In this document: one piece after another, positions 8,800-54,666 of the stretch
How positions within the stretch are numbered: position 1 is the stretch's first letter
How the letters are laid out: the number at the start of each line of letters is the position of its first letter
Assembly (NCBI GenBank): GCA_965240325.2
Contig: OZ251232.1
Coordinates: 2,170,001-2,234,000 of the forward strand
From: Rebecca billardiae RCC1528
Lineage: Eukaryota > Protista > Haptophyta
DNA: 64,000 bases
Direction: 5' to 3'
Notes under the pieces: generated by a model
The model's input: the letters and a program-made list of their open reading frames with translations, nothing else
Database searches by the model: none
What the model was told of the DNA's origin: nothing
Program-made: the position numbers and the translations under genes

Positions 8800-10137
8800 T
8801 GTCGAGGCAGGAGCGCTGCGGCAGCGAGCGCGCCGGCGGGGCGGCCGCAGGCCGTTGTTGAGCTGCGCGAGCGCGCGCTCGCCCTGCTGCGGGCGAGCGG
8901 CAGCGAGCGGCGGTGCGAATGGAGCGTGCGGCGAGCACGGCCACGCCGAGTGCGAGCGGCACCGCCACCGCGCGCCGAGGAGGCAGCAGCGGGCGGCGAG
9001 CTGTCGAGGCCGGAGCGCGGCGGCGGCGAGCGCGGCGGCGGCGCTGCAGCAGGCTGTGTCGAGCTGCGCGAGCGTGCGCTCACCCTGCTGCGGGCGAGCG
9101 GCAGCAAAAGCGAGCGGCGGCGCGAATGGAGCGTGCGGCGAGCACGGCCACGCCGAGTGCACGCGGCACCACCACCGCGTGCTGTGGCGGCAGCAGGCGC
9201 AGCGGGCAGCGAGCCGTCGAGGCAGGAGCGCGGCAGCAGCGAGCGCGGCGGCAGTGTGGCAGCAGGCTGTTGTTGGGCTGCGCGAGTGCGCGCTCGCCCT
9301 GCTGCGGGCGAGCGGCAGCGAGCGGCGGCGCGAATGGAGCGTGCGGCGAGCACGGCCACGCCGAGTGCAAGCGGCACCACCACCGCGTGCTGTGGCGGCA
9401 GCAGGCGCAGCGGGCAGCGAGCCGTCGAGGCAGGAGCGCGGCAGCAGCGAGCGCGGCGGCAGTGTGGCAGCAGGCTGTGTCGAGCTGCGCGAGCGTGCGC
9501 TCACCCTGCTGCGGCCGAGCGGCAGCAAAAGCGAGCGGCGGCGCGAATGGAGCGTGCGGCGAGCACGGCCACGCCGAGTGCAAGCGGCACCACCACCGCG
9601 TGCTGTGGCGGTAGCAGGCGCAGCGGGCAGCGAGCCGTCGAGGCAGGAGCGCTGCAGCAGCGAGCGCGGCGGCAGTGTGGCAGCAGGCTGTTGTTGGGCT
9701 GCGCGAGTGCGCGCTCGCCCTGCTGCTGGCGAGCGGCAGCGAGCGGCGGGGCGAATGGAGCGTGCGGCGAGCACGGCCACGCCGAGTGCAAGCGGCACCA
9801 CCACCGCGTGCTGTGGCGGCAGCAGGCGCAGCGGGCAGCGAGCCGTCGAGGCAGGAGCGCGGCAGCAGCGAGCGCGGCGGCAGTGTGGCGGCCGGCTGTT
9901 GTTGGGCTGCGCGAGTGCGCGCTCACCCTGCTGCGGGCGAGCGGCAGCAAAGGCGAGCGGCGGCGCGAATGGAGCGTGCGGCGAGCACGGCCACGCCGAG
10001 TGCACGCGGCACCACCACCGCGTGCTGTGGCGGCAGCAGGCGCAGCGGGCAGCGAGCCGTCGAGGCAGGAGCGCGGCAGCAGCGAGCGCGGCGGCAGTGT
10101 GGCAGCAGGCTGTTGTTGGGCTGCGCGAGTGCGCGCT
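8800..10137. repeat. ~210-bp tandem repeat, about 6.4 copies, alternating 213/208-bp units
   Basis: GTCGAGGC anchors at 8801, 9003, 9216, 9424, 9637, 9845 and 10059. Confidence 0.9.
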
Positions 10138-18652: not shown

Positions 18653-19056
18653 ATGAAACGTCGAGCATGCAACATCGCCGCGCCATCCTCGTCCATCGTT
18701 CAGACGCTGCGGGACGAGGCGGACGTCGTCAAGCCGGTGACGGATGAGCTGCGATTCGTGTGCCTGCTCGAGCAGCTTGTGCCCACTCTCAATCGCGAGT
18801 GGCACACGCTGTCGCTGTGCGCGCGCACGCACAACCAACAGCTCATCGTGCCGCCGAACACGCGGGCGCCGGACCTGTCGCACGAGACGAAGAGCGACGA
18901 CCGCGTGAACGTCGACGCGCTCGTGCTCAGCGTGGTGACCCTGCACGACGTCAACGCGACCTTCGCCGAGCCCATCATGCCCGGAACGGACATCGGCATC
19001 CTCGCGATCTCGGTTGGCAGCAGGAGGACATGCCCACGATCTACAGCATCTACTGA
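18653..19056 (+). CDS. Possible small hypothetical protein (appears to need a frameshift near 19000)
   Basis: ATG 18653, G/C third-position bias and globular-looking composition; a neighbouring frame ends DLGWQQEDMPTIYSIY* at 19056. Confidence 0.3.
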
Positions 19057-19089
19057 GTCGTGCATGCGCCGTGGGCGTGTGCATGCGCT

Positions 19090-21342
19090 CACGGCGCATG
19101 CACAGCACATCGATCCCTGCGCCGTGAGCGCGCGGCGCGCGGCACACACGGGGCGCGCTGTCTGTGAGTCTTCACACCGAGGCAGAACGGACCCGCCGCG
19201 CGCGCCCCGTGCACACGCTGGGCAGGAGCAGCAGCAGGCCGGGGGGCGTGAGGTCGCGCCGCGCCACGCGCGCGAGCCAGCCAGCGCGCGAGAAGCGATC
19301 TCGCCCGCGCACCGGCGGTGCCTGCGCGAGATGCAACCTCGCCGAGGCGCGGGGGCGCGGCGCGCACAGAGGTAGGTGTCGGTGGGCTTCAGGTCGTGGA
19401 TGCGTGCGTACAGCTCGACGGCGGAGAGCATCTCGTCGAAAGGGCAGACCTGCGCGTGGCTGACGAACAGATTGGCGCGCGCCACCGCCGGGCAGCCGTC
19501 CGCCGTGCGCCGATCCCTCACCAGCTCCGCCACTGAGCACGGGCCTGCTGGGCCGTTGAACCCGAGCGCGTGCCGAGCGGGCGCCGACATGCTGAGCCGC
19601 TTGGCGAGAATGCCGACCTGGTAGGAGGCGACGCCGGGCGGGACGTGGAGCTCGGACCGCAGCTCGCGCAGGTAGCCCAGCTGCACGCCCAGGAGCAGGT
19701 GCGGCCGCTCTTCCTCAAGCTCGGGCGCCTCGGGCTGCTGGACGGCCGCGGCACCGGCGTTGCTCGACGCCGGCACGATCCTATGCGATCGAGTTGAGAA
19801 GAAGAGCGACCGCCGCGGCGGCGTGCCCTGGGCCGAGGCCGAGGCCTCCGTGCGCTCGGTGGAGGTCACGCTGTAGACCGAGAGGCGAGCCTCACCCGCC
19901 TTGGTCGCGTTCGCGACGCAGCGGCAAAGCCGGCGCACCGCGCGCCACGCGAACGAGCACAGGCGAGCGGCGGCCGCGAGCAGAACGCGCGCGCAGCGCT
20001 CGAGCGGCCCTGGCACCAGCTTCACGCCGAGGGGCGCAAACGTGGAGGCGTGCACGGCGGAGCTCGCGTTGAGCGCGCATGGGAAGACGAAGGTCGCAAC
20101 CAGTTGGAACCATGGGTGCCCCTGCGTGGCGGCTATGCCCGCGCTCGCGAGCAGCGCGACCGCAGACGCTGCGTTGGTGCACGCCATCGAGCGCGTCAGG
20201 CTGCGCACGACGCCAGGCGGCAGAGACGGCAGCACCTTGCGCGCGCGCCAGTGCGTGTGCAGCGAGAGCACGAGGACGAAGAGCGGCAGCAGCACGGAGG
20301 CGGTGAAAAGCTGCAGGTACACAAAGCCATCCGGCGCCGGGAAGAAGTAGCACGCGCCCAGGCCCACGTCGAGCAGCGCGATGGCCGCCACAAACGCCAG
20401 CAGCCGGCGGCGCGCGCGCGGGCTGTGCGCGAGCGTGGGAGACGCGAAGCGCACGCCGTCGACTTCGGCGGAGGGCCAGGCGGCCTGCGCCCAGTAGAGC
20501 AGGAAGAGCGTGCCCGCGACGACGCCGATCGAGATGGAAGCGACGATGAGGAGCTGCCACACCGGGACCGGTAGCCTCCTCGATTGCGCAAGATGAAGCA
20601 CGAGCGCCACAAGCTGAGCGCCAAGCTCGAGCTGCAGCACAGCCTGTGCGATGCCCGGCGACAGCCCGCCGTCCGCGCGCCAGAACGCGTACAGCCGGTT
20701 GGCGATCAGCTCGATGAGCACGAGCGACTGCAAGACGAGCAGCACGTCGCGCACGACCCACGCGGGCGAGAGGCGCACCGTCACCCACACCGTCTCCGAG
20801 CGCGTGAAGCGAGCGTGCACCTCCTGCCCGGCGAGGAGCGCATCGACGAGCGGCCTCGCGCCGCGGTGCGTGACGTCGGCGGCGGGCGGGTGGGGCAGAC
20901 TGCGCGAGTCACCGGGCCAAAAGTGGTAGTAGCGCCACCCCGGCAACGGGTCGAGGCTCGTTTCCGCCGCCGCGCTGTAGATGAGCCAGCCGACTGCGCC
21001 CGCAGCGCCCGCGCCGCGCGCGTTCGACTCGTACGAACAGTGGGAGATTGACGGTCTGTGCCGCAGGACGATGGCGCCGTCGAGCGACTGCGAGCCGACG
21101 TACACGGGCGGGCACGGCCCGTCGTTCCACTCGTCCGAGCGCGTGAGCACCACCCGCGCGCGCACGTCGAACGCGGCGGGCGTGAACGCGAACGGCGCGG
21201 CGAGCAGCTCGGCGCCGCGCAGGTGTGGCGGACCGGCCTCGACGACGAGGCGCGCGCAGGCGGGGCGCGCCGCGAGGAGGAGGACGAGGGCGGCGAAGGG
21301 GCCGGCGGCGCCGCGCGGCGAGCAGCCGCGCCGCTGGAGCAT
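19090..21342 (-). CDS. Signal peptide + PA domain + seven TM helices + start of a TIR-like (FVSHA...WIDxxC) domain; 3' end unresolved
   Basis: PA motif CSYESNARGAGAAGAVGWLIYS; seven hydrophobic segments; ANLFVSHAQ; intron 19367-19117 gives TYL-WIDVLCMR; no convincing continuation beyond ~19090. Confidence 0.65.
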
Positions 21343-22123
21343 AACTTCGAGCGAGCTATTCGCGCGGGGCACGTGCACGATCCCCCCTGAGACCTTTGCT
21401 CCCACCGCGAGATCGGAGAATCCTTGCTCAGTCAATAATTGATGACTCGATGGTCCTACCCCCAAATGTCCATACAGTTTACTAAGAATAAAAGAGACGC
21501 ACACAGCTCAGGCAGGCGACAGTATCATATCACGAATGTACCCATTCTATGATTTAACGACACAGGTCGTAGTACAATTTGGCGCGATATCTTATTATAT
21601 TGCGACAACCCAAAACGCGGTGAAAAACGAGCGGCGACAGACGAATCAGGAGAGCTCTGAGCTGCGCCCTCGTGCCTACTGTGTCTTTTAAAATCATGCG
21701 CATCATAAAATCGGTCATTTTTCATCATAATAATAAACTACGACTCTATCATCTATTATCATTATAAATTATAGATGTGGTCTTCTCGGCCGCCTGAGCT
21801 GCTGTGTGCGCGTCTCTTATAATCATGACGACGAATGAGTATCCCGGCCAGTCGCCGAACCGGCACGGTCAGGCTGGCCAGGGTAGGGCTGGAGGCTTCG
21901 GCCGCCAGTCTGATCACCCGGAGCCCGTTATAAAGGGGAATTTAAAAGGCTTGACGCGCCTACTATGATATATGCCTGCTATCCGGTAACGACTTACCCG
22001 GAATGCCGTGAGCCGTATCTGCCCGTATCATATGACCGTACTCACTCTGGCTCTGCAGCTAACTGGTGCCCCGCCGCAGCATAGTGAGCATGGGGGCGCG
22101 ACGCGCCGGCGCCCTGCCTGGTG

Positions 22124-49049: not shown

Positions 49050-52000
49050 ATGCTGCCGGCGCTAAGGCGACGACCAGCGCGCGGCGGGGGCCTGGTCATT
49101 GTCACTGATCCTGGTACGCTCTCTTGCCAGCCGTCGCGCGCGCGCAGGGGCGCGCGCTCGGGCGCGTGCGTGTGCGTGTCAACTGGAGCGCTCACGACGT
49201 GCCGCCCGCGCGCCGCGCGCGCGTCCCTCCGCCGCAGGCCCTGATCCCGATGACGTCAAATGTGCGCGCGGATCGGCACGCTCGCGAGTGCTCCGCGATG
49301 CGCACCAGCGCGGCGCGGCGCGCGCTGGCCGGCCGTGCGCCTTGCGCGCGCGCGCGCGCGCGCGCCGATCGCCCACCCGTGCCACGCCCGCGCCCCGCGC
49401 GCCCGCCCCGCCTGCCTCGCTCGTCGCAGCGCTGCTCATCGCGAGCGTGCTCCACCGGCAGGGCGATCTGCAGCTGCGCGCGGTCATCTGCAACGGCGGG
49501 CAGCAGCAGACGCAGCGCGCCGCCCTCGCGCGCTGCATCCTCGACAAGCTCGGCCTGCCCGCCGTGCCGGTAGGCGTCGGCACGGCGGGCAAGGCATATG
49601 CCGCGCGGCCGCACGAGTTCAGGCTGCTTGGCGCGGCGCTCGACGACGTGGACCTCTCGCGGCTGGAGGAGGGCGCGCCGCTCTTCCGCCGCGTGCTCGC
49701 CGACGCGCCCCCCAAATCCATCACCGTCCTCTGCATCAGCAGCCTGCGCGACTTTGCCGACCAGATCAGCGCGGACGCCGAGCTCGTGCTGACGAAGGTG
49801 AGGGAGGTGGCGGTGCAGGGCGGGCTCGAGTGGAGCGAGGCGGAGCGGCGCTGGGTGCCGGACACCAGGTGCGCGCCGCGCGGCCGCGCGCCGCGCGACG
49901 CCCGCCGGCCGCGAGCGGCTGCCGCGCGCGCGCGCGCGCGGCCGCGCTCGGCTGTCGCGCTCGGCGGCTCGTCGCGTCCTGACACGCGTGTCGCGCGCCC
50001 GTGCGCCGCGCGCGCCGCGGCGAGCAGCGTGAACAACACGTTTGACATGGAGGGCGCGGACCGCGTGTACTCCTTCTGCTTCGAGCGGCACGTCCCCTTG
50101 GCCGTCGTCTCGCGCGACGCGGTGCCGATGCTGCCGATGCAGGTGCGCTCTCGCGCGCCGGCGCGGCGCTGCGGGCCGCCGCGCGAGGCGCGCCGCGCGC
50201 GCCGCGCGCGCCGCGCGCGCCGCGCGCGCCGCTCGCGTGCCGCGCCGCCGCGGCTGCCGCGCGCCGTGGCGCCGAGCTGAGCGGCGGCCGCGCGCGCGCG
50301 CGCGCCCGCCCCTCGCGCCCCGACCACCGCGCAGCTCGCAAAGTCCTTCGCCGTGCGCACGCGCGACCCCATTATGACCTACTTAGCGGACGCGCAGTTT
50401 CTGGGTCTCGAGGGTTTGTGGCGAAAGCTGTGCGCGGGCGAGCTGCCCGCGCGCTGCACGAAGCAGTGGTACTTCGCGACGTTCTGCGGCACGGACGCGG
50501 AGGCGTTCGAGCGCGAGGGCCACGAGAGCCTCGACGCGCGCGCGGACATCGTGCGCCACCTCAACGGATTCGTCAAACCGTGCGCGCGCGCGCGCGCGCG
50601 CGCGCCAGCCACGAGCACGCACGGAGCAACCGCTCCCTGCGGCCGCCGCGAGGCGCCGCCGCGCGCTGTGCGGCGGCTGCCGCGAGCACGCAGGGAGCGG
50701 CCGCGCAGCGCGCGTCGGCGCCGGCGCGCGGCGCGCGCGCGCTCACGCGCCCACCCGCGCGCGCGCGTCTCGGCCCCTCGCAGGTACGACGTGGTCGCGC
50801 TGATGACGGTGCTGCCACACACGCGCAACTTCTTCCCACAGCCCGCGCCCGGCTTTGGGCGCGCGCTGCGCATCTACTCGCGCGCCGAGCACGCGGTGGA
50901 CACCGCGCACGTGCTCAAGCTCCTGCGGGACACGTACCACGAGGTGGTGCTGATGGTGCAGGACTGCAGCGCGTCGGAGCAGCCGCTCTCCGGCGCGGGG
51001 AGCCCGCGAAGCGGCGGCGGCGGGAGCATGACTCGGCCCGCGCCGCGCTCGCGGCTCGCCAGGCTGGGCGGCGGCGCGGGCAGCTGGCACGCGCGCGGCG
51101 GCGCGGGCACGGCGCCGGGCGGCGGCGGCGCGGGCGGCAGCGGCGGCTCCAAGGCCTCGCGCGTGCACCCGTGCCTCGCCGCCGGCCCGGAGCGGGGCCT
51201 CTCGGAAGCATCGTCCGGCGCGGAGCACGCGCGGAATTCGGCCTCACGGCCCGGCGCGATCGATCAGAGGATGCGCGTCCAAGTCGCCGCGCCGCAGCAG
51301 CCGCCGGGCGGCAGCCAGCACCAGATGAACCAGGCGCAGCAGCAGCAGCTGCAGAGCCTGTTCCAGCAGCACTCGCAGTACACGTCGGACGACGAGGGCG
51401 AGCCCTACCTCTCGCCCGTGCGCCGCCGGCTGCACTCCGCCTCGGCGGCGGTGAGCGGCGGGCTGCGTCTCGAGCCGTCGTCCGGAGGCCCCGATCGCGA
51501 TCGGCCGGACCGCTCGTCGCGCGCGCGCTGCTCGCTGTTTTCGTCCGACTCGATCATCCTCGGCTCGCCGTCGATGCAGCCGACGGCGGCGGCGGGCGGC
51601 GGCGCGGCGGGCGAGGCGGCGGCGGACGCGGAGGCGCGGCAGCGCTCGAGCGTCTCGGGACGGACGGAGGAGGAGGAGGGGGAGGAGGGCGAAGGATCTC
51701 ACAGGCTGCCTTCCCCGCTGCTCGGCGGCGGCGGCCAGCCGCGCGCCGCCAGCCCGGCGTCGCCCGCGCGCGCGCGCTCGCGCTCGAGCGTCGAGCCCTC
51801 CGCCGCGGGCGCGCGCCGCTTCGACGTGGGCGCGCGCCAGCGCTCGCGCTCGAGCGCCGAAGGCATGGGCGCGGCGTGCGCCGAGCTCTCCGCCGCGGCG
51901 GAGGAGGGCGCGCTGGGCGGCGGCGGCGCGCGCGCGCTCTTTCGGCGGGACGAGTCGGCGTCGTCCAACGGCTCGTCGTCCGCCACGCCGATCGCCACGC

Positions 52001-54666
52001 CGCTGGGCACGCGCCGCCGGCTGCGCGGGCCCTCGCTCAGCACCGTCTTCACCTCCACCGGCTCCTTCTCGCCGCCGCCCGGCGGCGGCGGCCGCGTGCT
52101 CACTCGCGGCGCGCGGCAGCGGGAGGTGCGGCTACGCACCCTGGTGACGATGCTGGAACGTGCGGTCGCGCAGGCGTCGCGCGCAGAGTACAGGCTCGCG
52201 GTGGGCTCGATCTTCGCGTCGTGCTGCCTGCTCGCGTGCGCCGGCGTGCTCTTCGCGCTCAGCCGCTGGGCCGCGACGCTCTCCCTCGACGCCTCCGGCG
52301 CAGCGGTGCCGCTCCACGACGCCGCGGCGTCGACGTTGTATCTCGCTTTCGGGATGGCCGTCGTCTCCCTGCACCCCACGTCGGCGTTTCGCCGGCTGGT
52401 GCGCGCGGTGGCGTGCGGGCTGGTGTGCGCGAACGGCGTCGCGCTCGGCGTGCTGCTGCTCGTGCTCGCGCGCGACGACGACGTCGACGCGCTCGAGCGC
52501 GCGCTCGGGGCGCCTGAGCCGCGCGTGGCGGCGGCGGTCGGCGCCGCGCGCATTGCGGTCGTCGCGAGCACTCTCGCTTGGCTGGGCTGCGCGCTGAGTA
52601 CGCGGTGGGCGCACACGCAGCGGCTGCTGCTGTGGCTCGTGCTCGCGGTGGGCGCGTCCGCGGGCGCGGAGGGCGTGCTCACGCTCACGCTGCGCGGCTC
52701 GTCCGGCGCGGCGTTCGGCGGCGCCGGCCGCGCCGTCGCCCTCTCGAGCTGGCTCCGCACGAGCACGCAAGGGGTGGTAGCGCTACTGCTGCTCTGGGGA
52801 CGCGCGCGCTCGGCGGCGCGCGCGGCGCTCAACGCGTGCGTGCGCAGGGGCGGCGGGCGCGGCGCGCACGACGGCTCGCTCGCGCCGCTCGCGCCGCTGC
52901 TCGGCTACGGCACCGCGCACGTCTCCCTGCCCGCCGCCCTCGTCTCCAGCGCAGACGCGCTCTTCCGCGCCGCGACTCTCGACAGCGCCGGACTCGACGC
53001 GATGCGGGATGAGTGGGCGAGTCCTGGCGGCGGCTCTTTTTTCAAGACGCACGGGGCGGAGGCGCGGTGGCGCGAGGCGCTGCCGAGCGAGCAGCAGGCG
53101 CCCGCCGCGGGCCGCCGGCGCATGCCCAGCCGCGGCACCTCCACCGACCTCTTCGGCCCCTCCGCCGCCGCGCTCAACTCATCGCCGCCGCCGCCGCCGC
53201 AGCAGCCGGCGGCGGCGGCGGCGGCTGCGGCGCATCATGGCCGACAGTCGCACTCGAGGACGACGTGGCACGGCGATGGCACGGTGCCCGACGCGGTGCT
53301 CGAGGTGCTCACGCGCGGCGCGCGCGGGCCGCGGCGCACGACCGGCGAGTGTCGCCACTCGGAGGACGGATCCCCGGCCTCGCCCGCCAGCGTGACGAGG
53401 CACCCGGCCACGCCGGACGAGCCCGGCGGCGGCGCGGTGGCGCGCTCGCGCGTGCCGCAGCCGTCGACGCCGGACGGTCGCGGGCGGCTGCCGCCGCGCG
53501 TGGCGCGCAACATCTCGCCGCTGCGCTGGGCGGCGGCGCACTCCGCGCTCGAGCAGGGGCAGCCGGCGCAGCCGGGCTCGGCCCTCCGCCACTCCTCCGC
53601 CTCGCCGCGCCCGCCGCCGCCGCCGGAGCAGCACAGGCCGCCCTCCGAGTCTGTCTCGCGGGCATCTGTCTCGCGCGACGAGCCGCAGCCCGGTGGGTTG
53701 GCGCAGGGGCAGCGCTCGGCGGACGCGAGCATCCGCGGCGCGGTGAGCTCGCTCACCGAGGCGTCGTTCGGGCCGCTGGGCCACCGCGCCGAGTACTGCG
53801 TCGTGCACTCGCCCGCAGACAGCGCGGAGCACAAGCTCGGCGCGCTGCGCGCGTGGGCTCTGAGTCAGCCCAGCCCGCCGGTCGCGTGGGTGGACGCGCT
53901 GTGCGCCGACCTGTCGCTGCTCGACCACGAGCACCTGCCGCACATGCTCGCCAACATGCACGCGTGCCGCCGGCTGCTCCTGCTCGCGGGGCCGCAGCTC
54001 GCCGACAGTCTCTGGTGCGTCGCGCAGCTGTATGCATGGAGCGCCCTCGGCCGGTCGATCGATGACGTCGAGGTCGTGCTGGTCGCGCCGCAGCCGCCCG
54101 AGGCCGGCGCGGCGCACGGCGGCGCGGACGGCGCGCCGAGCGGCGGCGGCGCGGACGGCGGCGCCGACGGGTGCGGCGGCGCGGCGGCGGCCGCCGCCGC
54201 CGCCCCGACCGATCGGCGCGCCGCGCGCAAGTCGACGTCGCCCGGCGGCGCGGCGGAGCGCGGCGCGCGCCAGGCGGCAGAGTCCGAGCTGGCCGAGCAG
54301 AACATCCTCGCCGCCTTCGACGCGTTCGCCGTGCACTACGCGCGCGCCGCCGACTGCCCGCAGGAGGACGGCACACGGATCATCCACTCCGTCGAGCTCG
54401 CGAGCGCGTCCGCGTACAACGAGGTCGTGCGGCAGTACGTGCCGCTGATCCGGCGCGCGATCGACGACCGGCGCGCGGCGGCGCGGCAGCGCGCGGAGGG
54501 CGGCGCGGCGCGCGGCGCCGCGCTGGACGGGCCCGGCAGCGGCAGTAGCCCCTCGCCGCCCACGCCGCCGCTCTTCCCGACGGCCGCCGCCGAGCACTCG
54601 AACCATCGCACGCGGCTCGGGGCGGCGACCACGGCGCCGATGCCGCGCCGCTCGCCGGTCGACTGA
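49050..54666 (+). CDS. Nucleoside-hydrolase-like domain + ~6 TM helices + C-terminal TIR-like domain (6 exons)
   Basis: Introns 49114-49237, 49262-49429, 49869-50027, 50143-50334 and 50580-50783 give a continuous frame with IVTDPGPDPDDVK, VPVGVG, VAVQGG, SVNNTFD, KPYDVVAL; TM block ~52190-52800; TIR-like HS.AD...K...AW...WVDALC...CRRLLLLAG...LWCVAQL at ~53780-54450. Confidence 0.8.

Follow-up and report, generated by a model that had tools for sequence, protein, structure and literature searches.

The type III effectors XopQ and HopQ1, secreted by plant-pathogenic bacteria, convert the immune signal 2' cyclic ADP-ribose (2'cADPR), a product of TIR domains, to ADP-ribose (ADPR), and the substitutions D120N/D399N in XopQ (D105N/D384N in HopQ1) abolish 2'cADPR hydrolysis (Roth et al., bioRxiv 10.64898/2026.06.15.732069). 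The same authors cite earlier work in which X. oryzae XopQ and HopQ1 were inactive on panels of nucleosides and nucleotides. Homologues of HopQ1 from Aureococcus, Thalassiosira and Emiliania form an algal HopQ1-like (HLP) clade, in a report that says nothing of TIR, of transmembrane segments or of domain architecture (Piechocki et al. 2018, PMC6019455). On the TIR side, the HET domain (PF06985) is a remote relative of TIR in fungi (Dyrka et al. 2014, PMC4986451), and in the haptophyte Gephyrocapsa huxleyi TIR proteins with multiple transmembrane helices respond to virus infection (PMC12489294). Here we describe a gene of the haptophyte Rebecca billardiae RCC1528, located at 49050–54666 on the + strand of a 64,000-nucleotide stretch of contig OZ251232.1 (positions 2,170,001–2,234,000, assembly GCA_965240325.2; hereafter the window), whose predicted product joins a XopQ/HopQ1-like hydrolase domain, six membrane helices and a TIR-fold domain in a single chain.

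We consider it somewhat better than an even chance that this membrane protein, with the order hydrolase, six transmembrane helices (6TM) and TIR, belongs to a nucleotide-signalling module in which the window copy, active as a hydrolase and inactive as a TIR enzyme, would act as a terminator or regulator, a function that we infer. The architecture is a new one built from known folds. An earlier note on this DNA, made from its sequence alone, had called the arrangement unfamiliar from characterised proteins, and in agreement with this no description of it was found in the literature searched; database entries name the proteins of the family 'hypothetical'. The features on which this reading depends are the following:

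49050–50964 (introns included), + strand: XopQ/HopQ1-like nucleoside-hydrolase domain, predicted, amino acids 1 to about 356
52195–52797, + strand: six predicted membrane helices, amino acids about 767–967
53785–54480, + strand: predicted TIR-fold domain of the protist 'HSW…WLDxxCxDQ…LWCxxEL' family
54025–54027, + strand: position of the TIR catalytic Glu, CAG (Gln), in SLWCVAQLYAW

The N-terminal domain resembles XopQ/HopQ1, its best match in the PDB and in NCBIfam, in the TDPxxDPDD cluster and in the C-terminal YD aspartate. It differs in that the window gene is eukaryotic, contains introns and is about 26–30% identical, and in that XopQ and HopQ1 are secreted effectors, whereas the window domain is the N-terminus of a polytopic membrane protein with a TIR fold. 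The domain appears to be of the HLP kind but, as distinct from the described clade, forms one end of a hydrolase-6TM-TIR protein of a Pavlovophyceae gene family. At the other end, the whole-domain fold is shared with enzymatic TIR domains (RPP1, RUN1 and RPPT-TIR of plants, SARM1, AbTir and ThsB; Z 8–10 over 117–143 residues in the top rows), and most family members carry the S/R-L-W-C-x-x-E-L motif of helix C, while the window copy has Gln for Glu, a Gly/Ala-rich insert of about 55 amino acids and no Pfam TIR match of its own. Likeness to HET is seen in the consensus W-L-D-x-x-C-x-D-Q, in weak matches to PF06985 by 12 of the 104 relatives in alignment A1 (best E 0.001) and in an Atlas cluster automatically named HET-domain; however, Pfam TIR_2 matches more of these relatives (31 of 104, best E 2e-6), the window domain matches neither PF06985 nor TIR_2, and its likeness to TIR structures spans the whole domain rather than only the part up to helix C. 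The G. huxleyi proteins likewise place N-terminal membrane helices ahead of a cytosolic TIR domain, but no nucleoside-hydrolase domain is mentioned for them and their catalytic Glu is kept (PMC12489294).

Gene structure

Searches and folds were run on single exons or domains, on intron-free DNA of relatives and on database proteins by reference. The window is 63–80% GC, and since DNA of 78% GC holds long open reading frames (ORFs) in several frames and on both strands, an open frame alone is little proof of a gene. The predicted gene comprises six exons with a summed length of 4770 nt, equal to 1589 codons plus TGA:

49050–49113, + strand: exon 1, ATG, a short basic N-terminal stretch and the first hydrolase strand (…LVIVTDPG)
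49238–49261, + strand: exon 2, a 24-nt micro-exon, (G)PDPDDVK(S), with the Asp cluster including the HopQ1 D105 equivalent
49430–49868, + strand: exon 3, core of the hydrolase domain
50028–50142, + strand: exon 4, hydrolase domain (VNNTFDMEGA…VPMLPMQ)
50335–50579, + strand: exon 5, hydrolase domain, XopQ-specific helical region
50784–54666, + strand: exon 6, remainder of the hydrolase plus linkers 1 and 2, the membrane helices, the TIR-fold domain, the tail and the TGA stop

Upstream, the reading frame is closed by a stop codon six codons before the ATG. All five introns have the donor GT(A/G)CGC and the acceptor GCAG (ctg/GTACGC at the exon 1 donor; GCAG and GTGCGC on the two sides of exon 2), and four codons are split by introns (Gly, Ser, Ser and Pro). 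Each of the five junctions is bridged by intron-free homologues. At the KFE25_009413 locus of the pavlovophyte haptophyte Diacronema lutheri (GCA_019448385.1; L001:8922–10001), the N-terminal domain is a single uninterrupted ORF with 50–64% identity to exons 3–5, whose equivalents are contiguous there (59% for exon 4 and 64% for exon 5). Proteins derived from cDNA in MMETSP (P0014, P0022 and P0070) and proteins of Pavlovales sp. CCMP2436 are also contiguous over the junctions, as in the stretch VTDPGPDPDDxKALL, which spans the part that the micro-exon supplies as PDPDDVK, and P0070 and P0076 have N-termini that align with exon 1. Exon 6 is open across 1293 codons, and in each 300-nt block of it, linkers included, the GC content at third codon positions (GC3) is 91–97% as compared with 46–75% at second positions (GC2); the introns show a flat GC content of about 85–92% at all three positions. 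Taken together, the intron-free relatives and the coding periodicity indicate that the gene model is real and the splicing beyond chance, and thus that the locus is one six-exon gene with a predicted membrane protein product of about 1589 amino acids. The five GT-AG introns joining one frame, as the earlier note had them, are therefore borne out by consistent splice sites and frames and by the homologues that cross them, and its acidic motif TDPGxDxDD is present as TDPGPDPDD, divided between exons 1 and 2.

The junction between the hydrolase and the rest of the protein could in principle reflect a hydrolase gene wrongly joined to a separate gene for the membrane and TIR parts. The NCBI model of KFE25_009413 begins past the hydrolase part, and at that locus the reading frames of the two parts do not match near L001:9980. 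In the window, however, the last approximately 60 residues of the hydrolase fold and the second catalytic Asp are encoded in one exon together with the membrane and TIR parts, without an intervening stop and with continuous coding periodicity, and relatives have complete MMETSP transcripts that encode the full-length fusion. Two separate genes are thus very unlikely, with a probability that we place close to nil.

The introns (49114–49237, 49262–49429, 49869–50027, 50143–50334 and 50580–50783; 124–204 nt) are GC-richer than the exons and packed with (GC)n and CGCGCGCC repeats. The strict combination of the donor GT(A/G)CGC and the acceptor GCAG is a useful splice signature for gene modelling in this genome.

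The hydrolase domain

Against Pfam PF01156, the profile of the IU-type nucleoside hydrolases, exon 3 alone scored 22 bits (E 1.4e-4) and did not reach the cut-off of 34.2 bits, while the intron-free ORF of the KFE25_009413 locus scored 41.2 bits, over the cut-off; PF01156 is also present in P0070 and other full-length relatives. When that ORF was compared with the PDB, XopQ (4kl0, 4p5f and 7jlu_B) was matched at E ~6e-23, the next matches being classical nucleoside hydrolases at E 1e-6 or worse, and the tail of the ORF gave a match to a proline-rich stretch only. XopQ was also the best PDB match of exon 3 (7jlu_B, E 2e-7) and of exon 5 (XopQ residues 338–409, E 7e-4), and the two matches are collinear. 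The top NCBIfam family was XopQ (NF041355) at E 1.5e-26 as compared with 5e-6 for UriH, and exon 3 alone matched the XopQ family at E 2.9e-8; since the scores lie far under the NCBIfam equivalog cut-off of 500 bits, the domain is a XopQ homologue and not an orthologue. A tblastn search against plasmids matched hopQ1 and xopQ genes.

To compare catalytic residues, exon fragments were aligned separately with HopQ1-1 of P. savastanoi 1448A (L003), using a numbering shifted by +40 from the annotated start. The window gene has Asp at each of the HopQ1 positions D101, D105, D107, D108 and D384, which cover the Asp cluster for Ca2+ and substrate and the two aspartates essential in HopQ1 (D105 and D384) and XopQ (D120 and D399). 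The Asp residues of exon 2 align with D105, D107 and D108, and D384 aligns with the D of YDVVALMTVLP, whose codon (50788–50790) encodes the second catalytic Asp. The nucleoside-hydrolase fold proposed for the N-terminal domain is upheld by the XopQ matches in the two databases and by the kept aspartates, and as judged from these comparisons XopQ/HopQ1, rather than the classical nucleoside hydrolases, are its closest counterparts.

The TIR-fold domain

An AlphaFold2 (AF2) model of the C-terminal domain had a mean predicted local distance difference test (pLDDT) score of 85.6 and a predicted TM-score (pTM) of 0.80, with pLDDT above 95 in the TIR core. The best 50 Foldseek matches in the PDB were all TIR domains (probability ~1.0), as were the best 50 rows of VIA-align, led by RPPT-TIR (7xoz_B) at Z 10.2 with 139 residues aligned. 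An exhaustive HMMER search with the KFE25_009413 domain collected 1668 cluster representatives at E ≤ 1e-3; the same domain matched the NCBIfam FxsC TIR-like family at E 0.0016, and the family profile matched the TIR domains of TLR15 and SIGIRR at E 0.01–0.03. The family consensus is HSW…WLDxxCxDQ…GPxxxxRLWCxxEL, and the structural look-alikes in the Atlas are haptophyte clusters automatically named TIR or HET. The TIR-like character first assigned to this module thus finds agreement in the modelled fold, and the domain belongs to a large protist TIR_2/HET-like family. Of the SHS/WxDxxC/LWC signature read from the sequence, the last two elements are there as WVDALC and SLWC, while 'SHS' reads VHS, the family consensus being HSW. 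Two further features lie within or beyond the fold:

54085–54243, + strand: Gly/Ala-rich insert of about 55 amino acids that separates strand D from helix D of the TIR fold
54481–54663, + strand: C-terminal low-complexity tail, from translation; not conserved

The insert is absent from the D. lutheri protein P0001 and was modelled at pLDDT 43–63. Its GC3 of 97% favours a coding stretch rather than an unspliced short intron.

Many other protist proteins have this TIR/HET-like domain at their C-terminal end (alignment A1, Atlas). In the Atlas, haptophyte, oomycete and diatom clusters that carry HNOB (haem NO-binding), TPR and DUF285 domains are among its structural neighbours, and the domain looks like a promiscuous module for output or assembly. 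Elsewhere in the window, the − strand at 18700–21504 holds a long ORF rich in hydrophobic segments. Its end, '…ANLFVSHAQVCPFDEMLSAVELYARIHDLK…', resembles the start of another TIR-like tail ahead of an intron; TIR-like tails on membrane proteins seem to be common in this genome.

Loss of the catalytic glutamate

Substitution of the catalytic Glu by Ala or Gln is the standard change for inactivating TIR NADases. In the alignment of the family profile with the TIR domain of TLR15, LWCxxEL falls on WCQYEL, which identifies the Glu column of the family as the conserved TIR helix-C glutamate. Among the 104 relatives this column holds Glu in 87 and Gln in 9, and the window copy has Gln; the conserved catalytic Glu expected of an enzymatic TIR domain is accordingly missing here. 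In a quick maximum-likelihood tree the window domain falls in a four-member group without Glu (window Q, P0119 V, P0114 L and P0179 L; Shimodaira–Hasegawa-like approximate likelihood ratio test 89), nested in a well-supported five-member set. A strong hydrolase-domain match is kept in P0119, and P0214, the D. lutheri member of the P0179 cluster, keeps both hydrolase motifs. Because such Glu-less relatives retain hydrolase motifs, the Gln seems to mark a subgroup in which the hydrolase is intact and the TIR domain probably inactive, and in the window copy the TIR domain is probably enzymatically inactive, as far as its residues tell. This casts doubt on two nucleotide-handling domains in this copy, although the idea fits most relatives.

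A sequencing or base-calling error at the Gln codon was considered and set aside as unlikely, since the nearest relatives also lack Glu. In the family as a whole the loss of Glu is recurrent, with at least three changes forced by the well-supported branches of the quick tree.

Should the TIR domain instead process NAD+ despite the Gln, or by way of a neighbouring residue, the window protein would be an active two-enzyme chain. Its remaining TIR core is well conserved and modelled at pLDDT above 95; against this stand the predominance of Glu in the column and the Leu or Val of the nearest relatives, which are incapable of serving as a catalytic base, and we give such activity little probability. 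Similarly improbable is that the copy is decaying, non-functional or barely expressed, its intact frame being a by-product of 78% GC. The long ORFs in several frames and on both strands, the lost Glu, the unusually long linkers and insert, and the retrieval of no identical annotated protein would fit decay. Opposed to it are the frame-specific GC3/GC2 periodicity over all 3.9 kb of exon 6, the intact splice sites, the kept hydrolase catalytic residues and TIR core motifs, and a Glu-less state common to other full-length relatives.

The membrane block and its topology

The soluble domains are separated from the membrane helices by further segments:

50965–52194, + strand: linker 1, about 410 amino acids, low-complexity, probably disordered
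52876–53019, + strand: juxtamembrane segment, conserved, LAPLLGYG … ADALFRAATLD
53020–53784, + strand: linker 2, about 255 amino acids, low-complexity

Neither linker has a family match (Pfam for linker 1), coding periodicity is maintained in both, and linker 1 shows no conservation with P0001. The hydropathy profile of the membrane block has five clear peaks and a weak sixth, six is the modal number of peaks in full-length relatives, and an AF2 model built from the 18-sequence alignment A2 gave six long helices (pLDDT 83, pTM 0.78) followed by the juxtamembrane segment, which is itself kept in P0001, in Pavlovales sp. CCMP2436 (L002) and across alignment A2. These results match the original count of about six helices. 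There are eight K/R residues ahead of helix 1 and six past helix 6, and the N-terminus leads directly into the hydrolase fold with no signal peptide. As the helix count is even and a signal peptide is absent, both soluble domains are predicted to be cytosolic, so that the model is consistent with the earlier proposal that the hydrolase and TIR domains share one face of the membrane.

Foldseek gave no specific PDB relative of the block (E > 0.5, TM-score < 0.32), and an exhaustive VIA search returned only generic helical hairpins at Z < 10; a channel or transporter identity is thus unjustified.

Thoeris effectors pair a nucleotide-binding domain with membrane helices. By analogy, the XopQ-like domain might bind a nucleotide made by the TIR domain and the six helices might be a channel or a membrane-disrupting effector, giving a one-chain TIR system of the Thoeris kind. 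In line with such a sensor-effector arrangement, the membrane block and the juxtamembrane segment are conserved family-wide and confidently modelled, suggesting that the block is more than a passive anchor, and the order of hydrolase, membrane and TIR parts is conserved as well. However, all catalytic Asp residues are kept, which points to turnover rather than mere binding, and the block is unlike any known channel in the Foldseek and VIA searches. We regard this alternative as unlikely.

Conservation of the fusion in relatives

The closest database protein is P0001 (KFE25_009413); no identical annotated protein was found among the database proteins retrieved, and the D. lutheri relatives reach at most about 71% identity over the best-matching stretch. 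The hydrolase domain was also found in 23 of the best 150 representatives of the C-terminal domain. With local hidden Markov models, the order hydrolase, about six hydrophobic peaks and TIR-like domain was detected in 12 or more proteins of D. lutheri and in several of CCMP2436, and four MMETSP transcripts labelled 'complete' (P0070, P0220, P0223 and P0237) have the three modules in the same order in one ORF. In the DNA of CCMP2436, the annotated hydrolase gene P0003 is followed, 1.4 kb downstream and in the same orientation, by a TIR-like domain, and the interval contains hydrophobic ORF pieces. The domain order that was to be sought in algal proteins therefore recurs in both Pavlovales species and in transcripts, and by these comparisons the window gene is a member of a Pavlovophyceae-expanded family that keeps the hydrolase-6TM-TIR order.

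This conservation bears on the possibility that the two ends of the protein have unlinked functions, the chain being a membrane-tethered salvage nucleoside hydrolase with a TIR/HET-like adaptor and no nucleotide-signalling logic. The weak family matches to Pfam HET, the classical adaptor role of HET and animal TIR domains (PMC4986451) and the standalone hydrolase P0014 would agree with it. Yet the hydrolase is closest to XopQ/HopQ1 and not to salvage nucleoside hydrolases, XopQ and HopQ1 are the proteins reported inactive on nucleosides and nucleotides in the work cited by Roth et al., and the fusion is conserved in at least 23 clusters, which argues for functional coupling. Unlinked functions are in our judgement distinctly unlikely.

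In the two Pavlovales genomes, a number of genes of this family seem to be incompletely annotated or split. At L002:12506–13660 of CCMP2436, the NCBI model P0003 ends past the hydrolase and linker, while the membrane and TIR-like parts continue on the same strand; this locus contains 2488 N in total, and a short run of X interrupts the ORF. At L001:9826–10003 the intron-free hydrolase ORF of KFE25_009413 ends in 'KPYD' followed by a GTGCGC donor; the intron has a run of about 35 C, and past the GCAG acceptor (~9969) the frame reads VVALCRAHAT-stop. Near 9980, a one-base offset separates this frame from that of the membrane and TIR parts (…PRTRHLMASAE…, NCBI start 10001); it reflects an indel in the assembly or else a genuine frameshift that splits the gene. 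In P0230 (947 amino acids, Logan assembly) the order is reversed, with the TIR-like domain at 268–422 and the hydrolase at 478–816; most likely two tandem family genes were merged by the gene caller, hinting at tandem arrays.

Proposed function

In the reading that we prefer, cytosol-facing TIR domains of the family that carry the Glu would consume NAD+ and produce a signal of the cyclic ADP-ribose type. The tethered XopQ-like domain would hydrolyse or convert this signal, as XopQ turns 2'cADPR into ADPR, and the result would be a self-limiting signalling unit localised at the membrane. In the window copy, with its hydrolase presumably active and its TIR domain probably inactive, the protein may act as a terminator or regulator and the TIR domain may serve TIR-TIR assembly or ligand binding only. 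The signalling or immune role suggested in the earlier note is plausible.

Several points weigh against this reading. The gene model is predicted from sequence, and a metagenome scan with exon 3 gave no match. Identity to XopQ/HopQ1 is low, 2'cADPR rather than another riboside is a predicted substrate, the production of 2'cADPR by haptophyte TIR domains is a supposition made by analogy, and standalone relatives such as P0014 indicate that the hydrolase has no need of a TIR partner. The Foldseek E-values of the TIR matches are just ~1e-2, and the window domain matched no TIR model in Pfam at E up to 10 or 0.1. A Gln at the catalytic position is no strict proof of inactivity, the long low-complexity linkers together with the loss of Glu could mean relaxed selection, and the membrane block has no known structural relative.

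Beyond the single gene, haptophytes might have an endogenous TIR pathway of the 2'cADPR type at membranes, in which generator and dedicated terminator reside in single proteins, Glu-less copies are specialised off-switches or decoys, and the pathogen proteins XopQ and HopQ1 are copies or mimics of an ancient enzyme that ended the signal on the host side, and not wholly an invention of pathogens; this broader proposal is tentative, and we hold it to be rather improbable as a whole.

The fusion, of the 'Rosetta stone' type, argues independently that XopQ-like and TIR activities share one pathway. It is timely, XopQ having long been an enigmatic effector until the 2026 preprint on XopQ and 2'cADPR (bioRxiv 10.64898/2026.06.15.732069). 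The family supplies natural versions with and without the Glu for direct biochemical comparison, and it also holds a conserved six-helix membrane block of a kind that has no known relative. Haptophytes are a major group of marine phytoplankton under heavy viral pressure, and the fusion suggests that they may have TIR signalling of the cyclic-ADPR type with built-in termination, and that algae may couple the making and the destroying of such nucleotide signals.

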